DNA of 63,805 nt, the filler included, from Neoconidiobolus thromboides FSU 785 (lineage: Eukaryota > Fungi > Entomophthoromycota), in the NCBI GenBank assembly GCA_025603075.1. It is 7 parts of 7 records of this genome, joined end to end, with 100 filler letters (N's around TTAATTAATTAA, not from the genome) between each part and the next. Parts side by side here need not be neighbours in the genome. Positions count along the whole stretch, not along the records: positions 21,767 to 45,171 come from MU626528.1; 6 more parts are not named here. One strand, written 5' to 3'. The position numbers and the translations under genes are program-made. Below are positions 22,655 through 41,211 of the stretch, one piece after another (the stretch's first letter is position 1; each line of letters opens with the position of its first letter). The notes under the pieces are model-generated. The model did not search any database and was not told the DNA's origin. It saw only the letters and a program-made list of their open reading frames with translations.

Positions 22655-25600
22655 TCACTTATCAAAATAAGGCTCTCTAGGTTTAACATGGATAGCAGAC
22701 CCAACCTCACTAGCAGTATTTTGGCTTAAGATATCCTTAGAACTAGGTGGGGTAGGCTCTCTACCCAACAAATTCGTTAAACTAAAAGGGTTAGAATCTA
22801 CTTTGTTTTCTTTTGATTCTGTATTAAATTTCTTTACTCTATATTTTGGATACTTTGGTATCTTTTCTTCCTCAACTGAAAATACTAAATAGTCATCTCT
22901 AAGCCTAGATCCAAGCTTATGTTTGACGATATCAACATAAGCACACTCATCCACCTTGGTATGGATCAGAAGATAAAGCGCAGTGATTACATCAGGTAAG
23001 CTAATATCCAGGCTTTGTACAATCCTTAATAGATCCTTTAAACGTTTAATACCAACTTTGTTCACTCCAGTAGCTAATATCTCTGTATAAATATCATGAC
23101 GGAACTTAAGCAATAAATTAACAATATCTTCCATCAATGTAAACTCTTCTAACCGTTGGGCTTCTTGGATATCTGTAGCTGCATCAATCACTTCTATAAA
23201 TGTAGCCAAAGTGGGTCGTTTTGGTCGAATATTCCCCTTGATACTAGCGTCACATACTGGGCAGATGCAGTAATCAGTATCAGTTTCAAAGCCTTTAATA
23301 CAATTGGAATGGTAATTGACCCCACATACTTGACATAATAGATTACTTTCTTTAGCATGATGAAAGCAAAAACAAGCGCCTTGAGAATACTTTAAGTTAT
23401 GTCCCTTTTCGACCTTTTTCTTCATCTGAGTTAGTTTAGTTGAAAATGGCGCATGCCTTCCCTTTGGTGTAATTAGTAAACGTAAGCTTTGGTCGTACCA
23501 CTCTTTGACTCGAGCTTGAGACGAATTAGTAGCATTACTCTCAATGATATTTAAATTAGTTGATGACAGCTTTCGTCCTAAACCAATATCTGGGATTGAT
23601 ATATTAGACTCACTCACAAATCCCCCTGGTAAAAGTGGTACATGAGCATTGTTTGCAATGGGTAATGGGGATGCCTCGAAAATAGTCTCTGTCTCTTCTA
23701 TGTTAGCTTGTTGCTTTACTCGCTCACCTTTTAATTTTTTCGCTTCATCTAAATGGTAATTAACGAACTTTATTTTAGGTTTAGTACCAATGAAGGAAGA
23801 CGAAAAGGAATTTAGTTTATCAGTTGAGTAAACAAATGGCGACCCTTCATCTTTTTCATTGTTTAAGATTGGTAAGTTTTCATTAGGCTGTTCACTATTT
23901 AGGTTAGGTAAGCTTTCATTATGCTCGCTACTTAGGGTTATTGTACTTACATTATGGGGTTCATTATTTGAGACAGTCAATCTATCTCGGTTTTGATTAT
24001 TCCTTGGGCTGGTCAGATTAAATGGAAGTTGTCTTTCGGTATTAACTCGATGTTGATTATAAACAGCAGGCTCTTCAACTAAGTTATGGGTAATACTATT
24101 AGAATGAGAATAAACTGGATGTACTTTTTGACTATTAATAGAATAAAAATTGCTTGACAGGTCTGATTTATACTTCTCTAAACGAGTTGGTTCATAAGCT
24201 TGTAAATTGTCTGATTTACGCGTTTCTAGATGGGCTGGCACATAGTTTGGTTTGACTGGATCATAAGTTAGTTTTACTGGATCATAAACTGATTTGATAG
24301 TATCACAAATTTGTACTTCATCAGATCTATAATCTTTCTGTTTTACAGGTTTGTAGTATTGTGCTTCCCCTGGCTCATAAGTTTCAACATCAATAGGCTC
24401 ATGCACATCCATTTCAACTTTGCTTCTGTTTTCTTTTTCCAGCTTATCTTTCAACCCAATCAATTTCCTCATCACACTATCTTCAAAATAAACATTACAA
24501 GCCTCTTCTTTTAACTCAATAATTGCTTTAAGTGATGGTTTATTATGATTTAATAGTAATTCTACTTTATATTGCCAATCAAGACTTTCGTTGATCTTGT
24601 TTAGTAATTTAATGAGCATTTTATTATCTTTTGGAATTTGAAATTCGCTTGCTAAATTACAAAGCAATACCAAATCACTAAGTGGATAGTAGGTTTCTAA
24701 TAGAGCAATAGCTCTTTGGTTCCATTCCCATTTAATTAATAACTGTTTCACTTTGTCATTCCCCATATTAAAATTATACTTCTGGCTGATTTTTTTGATA
24801 GAAAGTATTTTCGTATAATCCATTTCCTTCTGATTGAGTAATTGATTCAATTGATCTGTATAATTAGCTAAAGCTTCATAAAAATGCAAAAACCCATCAA
24901 TTTCCGTTGAAGCAATTTTAAAGCTCAGTGCTTCGTTTGCCAACTCCTTTACGTAGTTAAAGTACTCCCATTCATACTCAAATTTAAGCTGATTCTTATT
25001 TCCTGTCTGGTTCATACCTCTAAGAATCGCCGATGATTTATTAACCCACTCCTGATATTTATCCAGCATATGTTTCAAATTGATGCTCTCTGGAATAACA
25101 CATTGTAAACTAGACGCACTATCAATCAGATTCATCAACTCAAAATACTGGATCCTGTCGTTCTCTTTAAATAAATTAAGATACTTTTCCTTCCACCGCA
25201 TCAAAGGTAAACTCATTCTTTCCAATTTAACAATCGTGTTTTGCAAATGAGCAGTAGTAACATGAATAACCAAACATTTTATACTACCTTCACACTGACA
25301 TAATGTGGTAGCATGTGAAAGGCAAACAATCTTGTTTGTATTATTTCCACACATACAATAAACATGTGAAAGATAACAAAAAGTATTACATACAGCACAT
25401 TGGGGAATCTCAACTTGTCTATGATCTCTCAAAGCCTCTTTAAATATCTCTTTTGGTCCAATGCGCTTGGTTTGTTTCCTAGCTTCCAACTCTTGAAGAG
25501 TTATCTCTTTTAGTGAAGGTAATAGATGATTAGCTTGTGAAACAGTAAGGTTATTGTTGCTTAGATACAACAACAATTCCTCGAAACAAAACACAGGCAT

Positions 25601-27514
25601 TCTGTTTTGAAGTTGATAATCTATTTTGGATTTCAATCCAAATGAAATCCAATCATAAGGCGCGTAATAGATTGACTCATTAAAACTAAACCCATTGGAA
25701 TACCAACAAGAATAAGATTGCGGTAAAGTAATAACAAATTCACCTGCCTTTTGTTCACATGTATAAATGGGAATCCCTGCTTTTTGGATGTCTTGGGGAG
25801 ACACCATTGTTATTAATTGGTACATTAATTCAGGATCATTTTTAAAAAGAGAAGGTGCCAACTGTTTAAAGAAAGCTTCAAATTCATAAGCTGCATTTGA
25901 GGGTATACTATAATACCTTTTGCTCTCTCCCCAATGTTGATAGTTAATGGAATAAGCAAAGTGATCATCTGTATGCCAACAATGGGTAGAAAATAACATG
26001 GTAATATATGCCCATGGGACATTCATGCCTGAATGTTTATCTTGTAAATTTGATAACACATTACTTGGGCTATTGCCAATATTATTAAGATTCCAAGGAT
26101 GAGTAGCGATTGGATCATGTGGATTAATTTCAGCTGTGGTAAAACCAGAGCCCTGATAAGAAGATTGCAAATCATTGGCTGTTTCAACTTGTAAATCTAC
26201 TACTGGGTTATCGATGTGATGCCAAAACTCTTTTTCTTTGTTTAATGGTAACACTTTATTATTTCTTTTGTTAGATTGAGAGTCTGTTATCCTTAATTTT
26301 TGTATTAAATATTCTTGATAAAAGTCATTTGCTTTCGTCATAAATTCATTAAGATAATACCCATTGCCACTATCAAACCCAAAACTTGGCTCATAGTTTT
26401 TAAGGCATACTGGACAAAAGAAAGGAGGTAAAAATACAACATTTATCTTCAACTCAAAACATCCTAAATGATAATAATCTTGACATGTTTCACATTGGAC
26501 CATTGCATCAGTCTTAAGCTCGCCACCTAAACAGAGCTCACATTTTTTACCCATATTCTTTCTCACTCTCTTTTTATCTTTGATAGCTTGAATTTTATCG
26601 GCTAAATTCATATATTTGTTGTATGGTAATACATAATTCTCATATATATTTTTTAAAGAATGAGAGAGTGAGGTGCAATCGGCCGGATTATAGCCTAAAT
26701 TTCTACCAATTTGTGCCCATTTTTTGGACTTTACAACCTAAAAAATAAATTAAATATTAACTTCAACGCAAAAAGATGTATCAAAAGGCTGAACTTTACC
26801 GCTTCAAACCCACCCATCCCTTGTACCGTATTATTTAAATGTAATAAGTTTAAAGTCTTAGTATAAACTGTAGGTACCCGAAACAAGTTACCAAACTGTT
26901 CATTAAAAGTCTTTAACTTTTCATTGAAGTTTAGCTGTTCCCTTGACTTTGCTCCAAGGTAATTAATCTTTTGAGTATACGTTTTGAATTGATATTTCTA
27001 AAAATTAATAATTATAAATAACCAGTTTCACTAGCTTCTACTATTAACAAACCTCGACTTCGATTCCGAAATTCACTTTAAAGTTAGCTGGCGGTACAAC
27101 CTTACACATCCCATATCGCCCCGCTTTCAAAGTTAAAGCACCAATGAGTTCACCCATGTTATTGAATTCTTCTTCAGTGGGGTAGAAAGTGGGTACTTCT
27201 TCGAGCTTAAAATGGTTATCTGAAGATGCTGCTTCACTACCATCCATCTTTAGTTCCAAATTATTTATACCATGGCATGAACTCTCTTTAATGAACTCTT
27301 TCAATTCTTCATTTGTTACAGCGGTCGATGTATAAACTTCAGTTGGCTTTGAGTTTAAGCTATCATTAGTGACACTAGAAGGTAAAGGTTGAATTTCAGA
27401 TTGAGTTCGCTTTCTCCCAGGTTTGTTACGCTTGTTGATGGACTGTGGTGTGCTAGGGTCTTGATTGGATTGTAAAGTGATTTTTTTAGTTGATTTTTGT
27501 TTTCTCTTTACCAT
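22655..27514 (-). CDS. KDM5/JARID1-family chromatin protein (JmjN-ARID-PHD-JmjC-C5HC2-PLU1-PHD), 3 exons; third Fe ligand absent
   Basis: EVPTFYPTEEEF, ARID KKWAQIG, PHD CELC..C..C..H..C..CPVC, CWHTDDHFAYSINYQHWGESK, EFVITLPQSYS. Confidence 0.9.
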
Positions 27515-33967: not shown

Positions 33968-35380
33968 TTAGTTTACTTCATCATCAAGATTACTGTCAGT
34001 TTCTATATCTGGACTTAAAATCACCCCAGTAAACTCCTTACGCTGAATACAGGCTGGATAGTATTTCAAAGTTTTATTTTCATATTGTTTGTATCGATCC
34101 ATTAAAGTAGCATTGTTTACGACCTTTTCAACGTTTTCAACTAATGTATCTAACTTGTTATTTTCATTTTTTATAATCTCTGTTTTTATAATTTTCCAAA
34201 AACGCTCCATTGGGTTAAGAAATAAAGAGTAAGCTGGTAATTTTATATATTCAATCCCTTTTTTGTTTATGCTATCTTTGATTTCGTCTGATAAGTTATA
34301 AATTGAAGTATTCCCCATAATAAAAACCGCTTTGGAATTAGGTTCGAATATGCCTATAAGATTAGTTAAAAAATTATGAAATTTTTCACTGTTATATCCA
34401 TTTTTCCTCAATCCCACTATATTATCAAGCTCGTAGTGTATCACACCTCGTTTACTACTAATTGCTGTTACTAGAGTCAATGAAGTTAAATATTTACCAT
34501 GTGTAGTTTTATAAGCTACAGTAGTATCTTCCAAAATCCCAAATTTTCGGACTAAATCTAAATTAAAAAACAACTTGTCAACCCAAATTTTTTCAAAATC
34601 TGCGTATTTATCCATAGCATTTGCAAATTCAAAACGTTGTTCAATAATATCTTGAGTATTCCACTTCTTTGGGATTAGCTTAGTTTCTTTCCAAACTGTA
34701 TCTAAGTTTTTCAAAATGGTAGAAATAATATTTACTTTTAAGTCACCAAAATTATTATCATATAAATGCTGGTGGATTTTTTTATAACTTGAGCTACTAC
34801 TATTTTCGACAAAAATACCGGCTTCAACTACCATATCATTATTAATTATTTTGTTTACAGGAGGAGGACGTGATCCTTTAGCGATACCCTGCACATTAAG
34901 TGCCCTATTTAAAGTCGATTTGTTAAGACTATAAAGTTTACACGCTTCTATTTGAGTCATTTCACATTGAGTAACTTTTTCAACTGCTATTTTTAATGTT
35001 TCTCGATCAACTTTTTGTCTCTTAGCTGATTTACTACTTGAGCTTTTAACTAGTTTACTACTTGAGCTTTTGGCTGATTTATTACTTGGACTTTCAACTT
35101 GTTCTCCCATTTCTTCTTTACTAACAACAACATCTAGCTTATTTTGCTCCTCTTTAAGTCGACCATTTAAAAGTCTATACTCGATTTCTTCTTCAGTCGT
35201 TTTATTAAGTAAATATTCATATACGCCGTAAAGTTGGTTTGCTTTATCGAGCATTTCTTTATACTTAACGTAAAATATATCAGTTTCTTTTTTATTTTCG
35301 GCGATTTTCCTCTCATACTCTTGCATGTTAGCTTTTATTTGCTGCACTGATTCTTCCAAGATTTTACGTTCAGGAGTCAT
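33968..35380 (-). CDS. IS630/Tc1-mariner (DDE_3) transposase-derived protein with N-terminal coiled coil and HTH; second catalytic Asp replaced by Gly
   Basis: HTH MTQIEACKLYSLNKSTL; KIWVD; LTLVTAISSKRGVIHY; FIMGNTSIY (vs MDNAxxH); LPAYSLFLNPME (vs LPPYSPxLNPIE); 35-residue spacing; intact 470 aa. Confidence 0.82.
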   Translation of the reverse strand: MTPERKILEESVQQIKANMQEYERKIAENKKETDIFYVKYKEMLDKANQLYGVYEYLLNKTTEEEIEYRLLNGRLKEEQNKLDVVVSKEEMGEQVESPSNKSAKSSSSKLVKSSSSKSAKRQKVDRETLKIAVEKVTQCEMTQIEACKLYSLNKSTLNRALNVQGIAKGSRPPPVNKIINNDMVVEAGIFVENSSSSSYKKIHQHLYDNNFGDLKVNIISTILKNLDTVWKETKLIPKKWNTQDIIEQRFEFANAMDKYADFEKIWVDKLFFNLDLVRKFGILEDTTVAYKTTHGKYLTSLTLVTAISSKRGVIHYELDNIVGLRKNGYNSEKFHNFLTNLIGIFEPNSKAVFIMGNTSIYNLSDEIKDSINKKGIEYIKLPAYSLFLNPMERFWKIIKTEIIKNENNKLDTLVENVEKVVNNATLMDRYKQYENKTLKYYPACIQRKEFTGVILSPDIETDSNLDDEVN

Positions 35381-38670: not shown

Positions 38671-39278
38671 ATGAGTGAAAATACTAATAAAGACCAAAAA
38701 GATAACAATAATGATAATAATAAGAGTGAAGTAAATGTATTCGACCAGTTAAAGGTAAGCTAAGCTATTGTTAAATATAACAATATATCATTTTGACATT
38801 AAGTCTTTAAATTTATTTATTAAGACATATTAAAGCCTTATTAGTTTATTTTTTAATAATATAGGAAATTAAACTTTCAGACTTTAAAAATATATTTCAA
38901 ATACCATGTACAAGGACAGGTCTATTATATGGAGTAGGAGGTGGTATGAGTTTAGGTTTATTACATTTTATGATTAGTTGGAAACGTAAAGGAGCAATAT
39001 TAAAGGAGTTTATAAATTCTAAAACAGTAATGGCATCATGTCATAGAGCGGTTGGTGGCTTTGCGTTTGTATCAATCCTTTCATGGTATTTATGATATAA
39101 GTTTATATAGATAAAGTATTAAGTTTATAGGGAAAAATGTAAGTATGATAGGAAAGTTGCAGCTCAAAAAGTTCAATTGGTTGCTGAACAATTCAAAAGA
39201 ATGGAAAAGAAAAGAGCAGAAAAAGAAAACGAAAATGAAGAGAAAAACGTCGACTCTACGAAAAATACCAATACATAA
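38671..39278 (+). CDS. COX20: Cytochrome c oxidase assembly protein COX20, 3 exons (absent from ORF track)
   Basis: IPCTRTGLLYGVGGG...RAVGGFAFVSILSWEKC; two GT-AG introns. Confidence 0.85.
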
Positions 39279-39713
39279 TATATATGTATATTGTTAACAT
39301 TAATAATAAAAAATATAAACTAGAACAAAGTTTTTGAGATGAATTTTATTTAGAGTTTGAAATTAACCAAACATAGATAAATATTGAATAACTTTATAAT
39401 ATACTTTATTAAATAATGTTTTAATATAATTTCTCATTGGTATCTATATTAATATACATCAAGATATATTTTATTTTTATATACCTAATATTTACTAGAA
39501 TGCTTTAGGACATTAAATTTATTTGCTAGACAAAAAGCTAACTAATGAAATTTATTAATTGTAGAGTCTTAAGCCATTTGATTTGCAGAAAAATTAAATT
39601 AGGTAAAATCTTAAGATTTAATTATGTTCAAGTAAAACTAAAGAATTGTCGGGACACGAAATATCTCCCTCTTTGAAGAAACTGTTAAACTAGCAGCTAA
39701 AGGATTAATAAAA

Positions 39714-40536
39714 ATGAAGTTTCTTAAACCAGGAAAGGTATGGAGGAAAAACAAAAGACAATCAATATAAAATAACAACATATAAAACTGAAGAAATAAA
39801 GTCGAAACTTATTAAAAAAAATAATCAAAAAGGAAATTGGAACTAAAATTAATCAACTAGGTCGCCATTGTTCTCAAAGGACGTTATGCCGGTAAGAAAG
39901 TTGTTATTGTAAAAAATACCATATGAACTATTCACAAAAGCTAAAAGCTGAATTTGAAACTCAAAATTTAATGCATCCAACTTATAATTCCGGGTAATTA
40001 TTTGATGGATGCATTTCATTTATTTTTTTATTATATTATTATTATTTATTTATTTGGAATTGCGAGTTCCATATGACTACGATTTTTTTATTTTTTTTAT
40101 ATAAACACATAACGACGATGGAACTAAAGAACATCCTTACGGTCACGCCGTTGTTGCTGGAGTTGAAAGAACCCCACTCACCGTTACCAAATATATGAGC
40201 GAAAAGAAGATCGCCAGACGTACCCGTGTCAAAGCTTTTGTTAAAGTTGTTAACTACAACCACATTATGCCAACTCGGTAAAAAAAAAAAGAGTATAATT
40301 TTAACTTTCACTAATACCTTATAGTTATGGACTTGAATTTGATAACCTTAAGAAGCTTGTTAACGCTGATGCTATTGCTGAACCAACCAAGCGTAAGGAA
40401 TCTAAGAAAGCCGTTCAAAAAGCTTTCCAAGAACGGTAAGTCGTTTGCTAAGCTATTATAATTATACATGTTTAAATCTTTATATAGTTTCAAGAGTGGT
40501 AAAAACAAGTGGTTCTTCACCAAGCTTCGTTTCTAA
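39714..40536 (+). CDS. RPL27: 60S ribosomal protein eL27; exons 39714-39737, 39861-39920, 40114-40277, 40325-40435, 40488-40536 (absent from ORF track)
   Basis: [28 protein letters not shown]|[16 protein letters not shown]...[11 protein letters not shown]...[12 protein letters not shown]. Confidence 0.96.
39921..40113 (+). other. AT-AC intron (RPL27 intron 2, 193 nt, phase 0)
   Basis: acc|ATATGAAC...CACATAAC|gac joins KNT to DDG; no AG is available at this position. Confidence 0.85.
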
Positions 40537-41211
40537 ACTATTAATAACTTATTAAAAGAAGCTAATTAAAATTAAAATGTTATTTATAGACATTATATTG
40601 GAATTTGAAGTTTAATTAGATGTCATAAATGAGATACAAAATTTTGCAAAATTTATACTAATGTGTTAATCAATTCAAGAAAACAAACGAAAAGAAAATG
40701 AACACGGAATTAATGCAGATTTTTAATATTTGAAAAAGTGTATAATAATAGTTGTGAGCAATATTTCAATAGAATTTCACCAAAGTTAATATAGTAATTC
40801 TTTACTACGATGTTTTCTAAAATAATGATTTACTATATACGACTTACATAATAGGTAGGTAGTTAAAATGGTAACTATTACTATTTTATATTCAAAGAGA
40901 GATATAAGAATTACCCGATTACTCTAATCTATATTTCCCAAGCCTTATCTGTAGATGTAAATATCAATAAATATTTTCAAATTATTTTGTAAGTTTTAAT
41001 TTGCTTTTGTTATAATTAATAAAAATAACCATATAAGCTATATATTTAATAGTTTGTTGGTGAGTCATTAAACTTTTAAGATAGTTTAAGACCCCAAGCA
41101 TTTTATTTTGAGAGATTAAAAAAATTATTAAATTCCTATACTTTTTTATTGATTTACTAATAAGTTAAGTTATAGCTTATATATATTATGAAATATTATT
41201 CTATTAAACAT

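Follow-up and report, generated by a model that had tools for sequence, protein, structure and literature searches.

The gene for ribosomal protein eL27 (RPL27) of the fungus Neoconidiobolus thromboides FSU 785 carries, as the second of its four introns, an intron with AT-AC ends, and these ends are verified in RNA from four runs. The intron was already implicit in the GenBank coding sequence of N. thromboides; what appears to be new is the deep conservation of an AT-AC intron whose donor fits neither of the two spliceosome consensus sequences. The literature searched contained no description of an AT-AC intron in RPL27, and nothing on minor splicing in Conidiobolus.

The RPL27 locus of N. thromboides

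N. thromboides belongs to the Entomophthoromycotina (Zoopagomycota). The locus lies on contig MU626528.1 (GC content 29%) of assembly GCA_025603075.1, and positions given here count along the window, that is, the whole stretch of 63,805 nucleotides (filler included) that was analysed. GenBank lists a 135-residue Ribosomal_L27e product spanning exactly 39714-40536, the called gene matches Pfam PF01777, and the deposited protein (P0272) is 79% identical to Entomophthora eL27 (P0121) across a 120-aa query; Massospora eL27 appears among the matches of the search that paired these two proteins. The predicted product is a member of the eL27 family (Ribosomal_L27e, PF01777) and an orthologue of fungal eL27. 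The gene is built as follows.

39714..40536 (+), eL27 (RPL27) gene from start to stop codon, five exons, 135 aa (exon assembly, GenBank gene call, protein P0272)
39714..39737 (+), exon 1, encoding MKFLKPGK (RNA joint 39735/39859, cut +2)
39738..39860 (+), intron 1, GT-AG, 123 nt, phase 0 (RNA contigs and exon assembly)
39861..39915 (+), exon 2, ending GTAAAAA, i.e. V, K and the first base of N27 (RNA joint; unique mapping of P0272)
39916..40108 (+), intron 2, AT-AC, 193 nt, phase 1 in codon 27 (RNA joint 39915/40109 in runs X5, X6, X9 and X11)
40109..40277 (+), exon 3, completing N27 (RNA contigs; mapping of P0272)
40278..40324 (+), intron 3, GT-AG, 47 nt (exon assembly and RNA contigs)
40325..40435 (+), exon 4 (exon assembly; mapping of P0272)
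40436..40487 (+), intron 4, GT-AG, 52 nt (exon assembly and RNA contigs)
40488..40536 (+), exon 5, including the stop codon (exon assembly; mapping of P0272)

Introns 1, 3 and 4 are thus confirmed as GT-AG, as a preliminary description of this DNA, made from the sequence alone, had reported.

Several neighbouring genes were noted on the same contig. A Cox20 gene (150 aa; 38671-39278, +) lies between MCM5, whose ORF shows 100% identity to an N. thromboides FSU 785 protein, and RPL27, an order for which no synteny was found in Massospora or Entomophthora. Farther upstream, an intact 470-aa open reading frame (ORF) at 33968-35380 (-), with DDE_3 and HTH_psq domains and annotated as a gene in GenBank, is a Tc1/mariner- or pogo-like transposase. 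The interval 22655-27514 (-) holds a 1318-aa ORF with JmjC, PLU-1, C5HC2 and PHD domains and, upstream of it, a 156-aa JmjN ORF; the two are called as separate genes and look like parts of a single KDM5-type demethylase gene that an intron, or the annotation, has divided.

The intron 2 junction

Contigs from public RNA runs were aligned to the RPL27 locus. Those of X5 and X6 join 39915 to 40109 and skip 193 nt with the ends AT..AC, three bases (ATA) at the joint being compatible with both sides; loose contig ends reading ...GTTATTGTAAAAA also abut 40109 on its 5' side. X9 and X11 each yield a single contig (484 and 460 nt) that spans exons 1, 2 and 3 with 0 mismatches and carries both the GT..AG joint 39735/39859 and the AT..AC joint 39915/40109, the shorter side measuring 57 nt. 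Run X9 had been tagged 'DNA?' by guess and was treated as cDNA-like because it holds the fully spliced form and has the same word share as the RNA runs. The ends of the intron are these.

39916..39921 (+), 5' splice site ATACCA, the same in Basidiobolus meristosporus and unchanged in related strains X3 and X4
40107..40108 (+), 3' terminal AC (RNA contigs)

Intron 2 begins ATACCATA (ATACCA) and ends AAACAC; from the joint 39915/40109, therefore, the mRNA reads AAA AAT AAC GAC (K N N D). The deposited protein agrees, since P0272 reads VKNNDDGT and maps uniquely with an intron at 39916-40108 when GT-AG, GC-AG and AT-AC ends are all allowed. The relatives agree as well, with VKNNDDGT in Entomophthora eL27 and VRNNDEGT in that of Massospora, which has no intron at the site.

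The RNA joints and the deposited protein thus bear out the initial proposal of a plus-strand eL27 gene with an AT-AC intron, and revise its position. The preliminary description had placed the junction at 39921-40113, a solution that by coincidence is also AT-AC and 193 nt long, with the intron starting ATATGAAC and ending CATAAC and the mRNA reading AAT ACC GAC (VKNTDDGT). According to the RNA joints, P0272 and the relatives, that placement is 5 nt too far downstream on both sides, and no joint 39920/40114 was found in seven runs, six of which have mRNA rather than genomic DNA. Its statement that the site has no canonical solution was upheld: when donor ends 39900-39935 were paired with acceptor starts 40060-40125, no in-frame, stop-free GT-AG or GC-AG junction resulted, and the last AG upstream of exon 3 does lie at 40065-40066.

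With ATA repeated at both ends, the boundary of intron 2 could slide 1-3 nt rightward, to TA-CA, AC-AT or CC-TA. Two of these options, AT-AC and TA-CA, are common to all six orthologous introns described below, and of the two AT-AC alone belongs to a known class. Recursive splicing or a twin intron that hides a canonical GT-AG is ruled out: whichever of the allowed registers is taken, removal starts with A, T, A or C and never with G. RNA depth within intron 2 is zero in X5, X6 and X8, and there is no sign of retention in these contigs, which are not quantitative.

The apparent intron could in principle be an artefact arising from a second, canonical RPL27 copy, from an assembly error at the termini, or from a reverse-transcriptase jump between the ATA repeats. 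The 3-nt repeat that flanks the joint 39915/40109 would suit such a jump, and the best DNA run (X1) may be the assembly's own source. Yet X1, which matches the window exactly and as a single copy across 39500-40700, yields only one contig at >=90% likeness; DNA of the related strains X3 and X4 has the same AT, ATACCA, ATGAC, AC and flanks; the reading frame demands removal of exactly these 193 nt; and the same junction recurs in four runs, as does the same intron in other genera. We consider an artefact to be largely refuted already and scarcely credible.

Fully spliced N. thromboides RPL27 mRNA (39690-40340) was also recovered, with 0 mismatches, from runs labelled as several other organisms (X6-X8, X9, X11 and others), poly-A metatranscriptomes included; N. 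thromboides or a near-identical relative is present in these samples or contaminates them.

Conservation of intron 2 among fungi

Searches that started from the exon 3 peptide, followed by the Entomophthora protein, led to further eL27 loci; these were mapped, and a metagenome scan was added. In Basidiobolus meristosporus, RPL27 has the same four intron positions, and its intron 2 (L005 1658-1766, 109 nt) is AT-AC, lies in phase 1 within the same Asn codon, follows an identical exon end (GTAAAAA) and opens with ATACCA, as in N. thromboides; the product of splicing (KNFDEGT) is identical to that of a B. ranarum paralogue that is intron-free at this site. The metagenome scan gave three further loci (L064, L068 and L035), each broken at residue 28/29, that fit an AT-AC intron in the same phase. 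In L064 and L068, which share 96% and 90% identity with Mortierella hygrophila eL27 across 51 residues, the intron begins ATAGCA and ends in ATTAC; in L035, from an unplaced fungus, it begins ATACTG and ends in CAACAC. M. hygrophila itself (GCA_015680625.1) has the same arrangement at L087 1771-2703 (933 nt). The comparison with related fungi that the preliminary description had proposed therefore locates the same intron in B. meristosporus and, from DNA, probably in Mortierella, for the AT-AC junctions of the Mortierella-type loci (M. hygrophila, L064 and L068) and of L035 are predicted from homology and reading frame.

The AT-AC intron is absent from Massospora, the B. ranarum paralogue, Syncephalis and a Glomus copy, and the loci examined include no Dikarya example of the AT-AC intron. 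On the present sequences, the RPL27 AT-AC intron appears to be conserved across fungal phyla and not to be a local quirk of N. thromboides; because it is shared, it would predate the split between Entomophthoromycotina and Mortierellomycotina, provided that the predicted Mortierella junctions hold.

Two related observations concern gene models and a neighbouring intron. The M. hygrophila model P0348 (L087:1501-3434) continues past the AT-AC donor into the intron (…VKNSNPTTCSTF…) and so misses the true junction; at 182 aa against an expected ~136, it is a misprediction caused by the non-canonical intron, which in practical terms breaks gene prediction. An unplaced metagenome eL27 (L070:510-1156, L071:1-192) has instead an intron of 401 nt with GT-AG ends (GTAAGT...ACAG), in phase 0 following codon 28, which lies 5 nt downstream of the AT-AC site and so exactly where the N. 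thromboides intron had originally been placed; conversion, sliding or independent gain could account for it.

Splice signals and the two spliceosome classes

Six orthologous AT-AC introns, those of N. thromboides, B. meristosporus, M. hygrophila, L064, L068 and L035, were scored against the consensus sequences of both classes. The U12 donor ATATCCTT (/RTATCCTT) is matched at only 4-5 of 8 positions in all six, the N. thromboides donor ATACCATA reaching 5/8, and positions +4 to +6 vary among them (CCA, CCA, GCA, GCA, GCA and CTG). A U2 donor with A at +1 (ATAAGT or ATATGT) is matched at 3 of 6 positions in all six, and G at +5 is never present, so that these donors fall outside the type II definition (PMC1557818). 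The intron 2 donor fits neither class. The preliminary description had likened a donor ATATGA to the GTATGN donors of this genome; the real donor, ATACCA, is unlike GTATGN or GTAAGT (3/6, no G at +5), and with that likeness lost, the main argument given there for a U2-type reading falls away.

For the U12 branch site, TTCCTTRAY at ~10-26 nt from the 3' splice site, the best N. thromboides candidate matches at 6/9 positions and lies at 35 nt, outside that range. B. meristosporus alone has a 7/9 match, CCTTGAT at 20 nt from the 3' end, which is not conserved in the other five introns. The lack of a U12 donor and branch signature noted at the outset is supported by consensus scoring. What all six introns do share is ATGAC, placed at the 5' edge of a long pyrimidine (U/C) tract and 25-73 nt from the 3' end; a shared non-T-rich 5-mer arose in 1.3% of shuffles (last 80 nt, four independent lineages). 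The corresponding elements of N. thromboides are as follows.

40073..40077 (+), ATGAC, candidate branch site; its putative branch A, at 40076, precedes the 3' splice site by 32 nt
40083..40098 (+), U tract (T7 A T8), downstream of the candidate branch site and ahead of the 3' splice site

The TGACTAC at 40074-40080 that had been pointed out earlier, followed by a T tract upstream of the AC, is indeed present and overlaps the conserved ATGAC. ATGAC fits U-R-A-Y, and all six orthologues have a predicted yUnAy branch site with a pyrimidine tract; use of the A as branch point is likewise a prediction. In a 30-nt window whose end lies 3 nt short of the 3' splice site, the pyrimidine fraction is 0.67-0.87 in the six AT-AC introns versus 0.30-0.60 in the GT-AG introns of the same genes. 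U12-type introns are without a pyrimidine tract and need a short spacing between branch site and 3' end. Here a tract is present in all six, and the 3' half of intron 2 looks like a U2 layout and unlike a U12 one. U2-dependent AT-AC introns are an established class (PMC1557818).

A degenerate intron that is still U12-dependent, kept only in lineages that retain U11, U12, U4atac and U6atac, must nevertheless be weighed. Its AT-AC ends and phase 1 would suit such a dependence, as minor introns have a phase bias that phase 1 fits (PMC10639083); so would its occurrence in Mortierella-type fungi as well as Basidiobolus and Neoconidiobolus, but in none of the Dikarya loci examined, the richness in minor introns of B. 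meristosporus, Basidiobolus being the fungus with the most of them, and the CCTTGAT of the B. meristosporus copy. The U12 donor, however, is the most constrained feature of that class and is missing in six orthologues, whose +4 to +6 positions are unconserved; CCTTGAT is not conserved in the other five, the conserved element being ATGAC followed by a pyrimidine tract; and fungal minor introns otherwise follow the standard consensus known from animals and plants (PMC10639083). We regard continued U12 dependence as decidedly unlikely. A search for other U12-type introns in the contig returned two ATATCCTT sites (22731 and 29874) antisense to minus-strand ORFs, which were rejected, and the total count equals the chance expectation.

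The initial interpretation therefore survives in part: an AT-AC intron that departs from GT-AG, lacks a U12 signature and has a U2-like branch element and U tract stands, and its junction and its donor argument do not. The U2 dependence of intron 2 is something we infer from the remaining features.

Additional elements within intron 2

Two potential RNA structures are found between the donor and the candidate branch site.

39970..40015 (+), hairpin with a perfect 10-bp inverted repeat (39970-39979 / 40006-40015) and an inner 6-bp stem
40055..40071 (+), small hairpin TGGAA / 7-nt loop / TTCCA, directly 5' of the candidate branch site, read from sequence

Strains X3 and X4 have the long hairpin unchanged as far as 40009, and the 109-nt Basidiobolus intron does not show it. 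In the three Mortierella-type introns, too, a hairpin (GGAA/TTCC stem) is found upstream of ATGAC. The fold z-score of intron 2 is -2.6. When the introns are aligned on ATGAC, Basidiobolus and Mortierella share 13 of 15 surrounding bases. Searches for a snoRNA or other known RNA in intron 2 gave no Rfam match at gathering score (best E-value 4.7), and the 23.4-kb contig as a whole gave none.

The sequence CCATATGA occurs twice in intron 2, at 39919-39931 on the donor side and at 40069-40081 at the candidate branch site, and because its core CATATG is palindromic, the donor and branch regions are predicted to pair. The N. thromboides donor region can pair with bases upstream of ATGAC at a marginal level (p = 0.036). 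As a conserved feature such pairing was rejected, being marginal also in Basidiobolus (p = 0.054) and absent in the other four orthologues. In strain X4, a G -> A change at 39925 would break one of these pairs.

DNA contigs of the related strains X3 and X4 carry many single-nucleotide polymorphisms (SNPs) and indels in introns 1 and 3; intron 2 has two SNPs and single-T length changes, and the RPL27 exons are unchanged, synonymous sites included. Intron 2 has 2 SNPs in ~296 compared nt and introns 1 and 3 together have 17 in 340 nt (Fisher p = 0.0016), a hint that more than the splice signals is under constraint; these numbers are small and drawn from contigs.

These features raise the possibility of a separate kind of AT-AC intron, in which the splice sites are chosen not through ordinary donor recognition and instead through conserved elements (the ATGAC region and the hairpins) or through a bound protein, possibly eL27 itself in a feedback loop. 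A donor that fits neither consensus, the low rate of strain changes in intron 2, the bases common to Basidiobolus and Mortierella around ATGAC, and the potential of the N. thromboides donor region to pair just upstream of that element would all be in keeping with it. Against this, the donor-branch pairing is not significant in 4 of the 6 orthologues, the long hairpin is absent from Basidiobolus, there are neither Rfam matches nor visible retention, and the SNP comparison has the limits just given; we think this unlikely. A bolder form, similarly improbable in our estimation, would make the RPL27 intron of early-diverging fungi an AT-AC intron of a third kind, whose donor (AUA and then variable bases) neither U1/U6 nor U11/U6atac reads in the ordinary manner. 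Its use would rely on the invariant exon end AAAAA and the ATGAC element (~15 nt shared between Basidiobolus and Mortierella), possibly also on a dedicated factor or eL27 feedback, and it would date from before the split between Zoopagomycota and Mucoromycota.

A model for the removal of intron 2

The reading that we favour, as reasonably probable though by no means assured, is that intron 2 is a spliceosomal AT-AC intron of ancient date, which has kept its position and phase and is efficiently removed by the major spliceosome. Several features would favour its removal by the U2-dependent machinery, as a divergent type II AT-AC intron: it lacks the U12 donor and has a pyrimidine tract, its candidate branch site lies far from the 3' end, and fungal minor introns keep the standard consensus.

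In such a pathway, U2 would pair with the yUrAy-like branch site AUGA*C, and the long U/C tract could recruit U2AF and so compensate for the absent AG. In yeast, the suppressor pair of G1A and a 3'-terminal G-to-C change points to a contact between the first and last intron bases. At the second step, the first A and last C of intron 2 may stand in for the usual G-G contact between the intron ends. Past +3, the donor has no match to U1 or to U6; the cleavage point is therefore perhaps set largely by the exon end AAAAA, and we speculate that this invariant exon end might pair with the complementary U-rich loop I of U5.

Several points speak against removal by the major spliceosome. The donor fails the working definition of type II introns, which calls for a good U2 donor apart from +1; the carriers are early-diverging fungi, in which the minor spliceosome survives, with no Dikarya example seen; and phase 1 and the CCTTGAT of the Basidiobolus intron, as described above, fit minor introns.

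Significance and comparison with known AT-AC introns

RPL27, the host of intron 2, is essential and expressed at a very high level, and the contigs included no unspliced form. The position, phase and end bases of the intron appear to be kept in at least two fungal phyla though its donor matches neither consensus, and it therefore offers a natural test of how the 5' cleavage site is selected where neither donor consensus is available. The intron may also bear on the interconversion of minor and major introns.

AT-AC introns outside the minor class are very rare, with 24 among ~610,000 introns of five model species, and those known look like ordinary major introns apart from the two end bases (PMC1557818). 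The RPL27 intron resembles these type II introns (as in human SCN4A and SCN5A) in having AT-AC ends, in lacking the U12 donor and branch motifs, in combining a pyrimidine tract with a branch-like element of U2 type, and in borders conserved over long evolutionary distances (PMC1557818). It differs from them in its donor: known type II introns depart from a good U2 donor only at +1 (ATAAGT-like), whereas the RPL27 introns have ATACCA, ATAGCA or ATACTG and no G at +5. It differs also in its host, a highly expressed ribosomal protein gene of early-diverging fungi, and its dependence on the major spliceosome is inferred.

Yeast double mutants that combine G1A with a change of the last G to C demonstrate that an A...C end pair can pass the second step of the major spliceosome, in an engineered intron that is otherwise of consensus sequence and is spliced inefficiently. 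The RPL27 intron, in contrast, is natural and conserved, and was seen with no retained contigs. With the U12-type AT-AC introns, finally, it has in common AT-AC ends, phase 1, great age, a position that is kept, and lineages in which minor splicing persists; unlike them, it has neither the ATATCCTT donor nor a conserved TTCCTTRAY at 10-26 nt, and it combines a pyrimidine tract with a long spacing between the candidate branch site and the 3' end.
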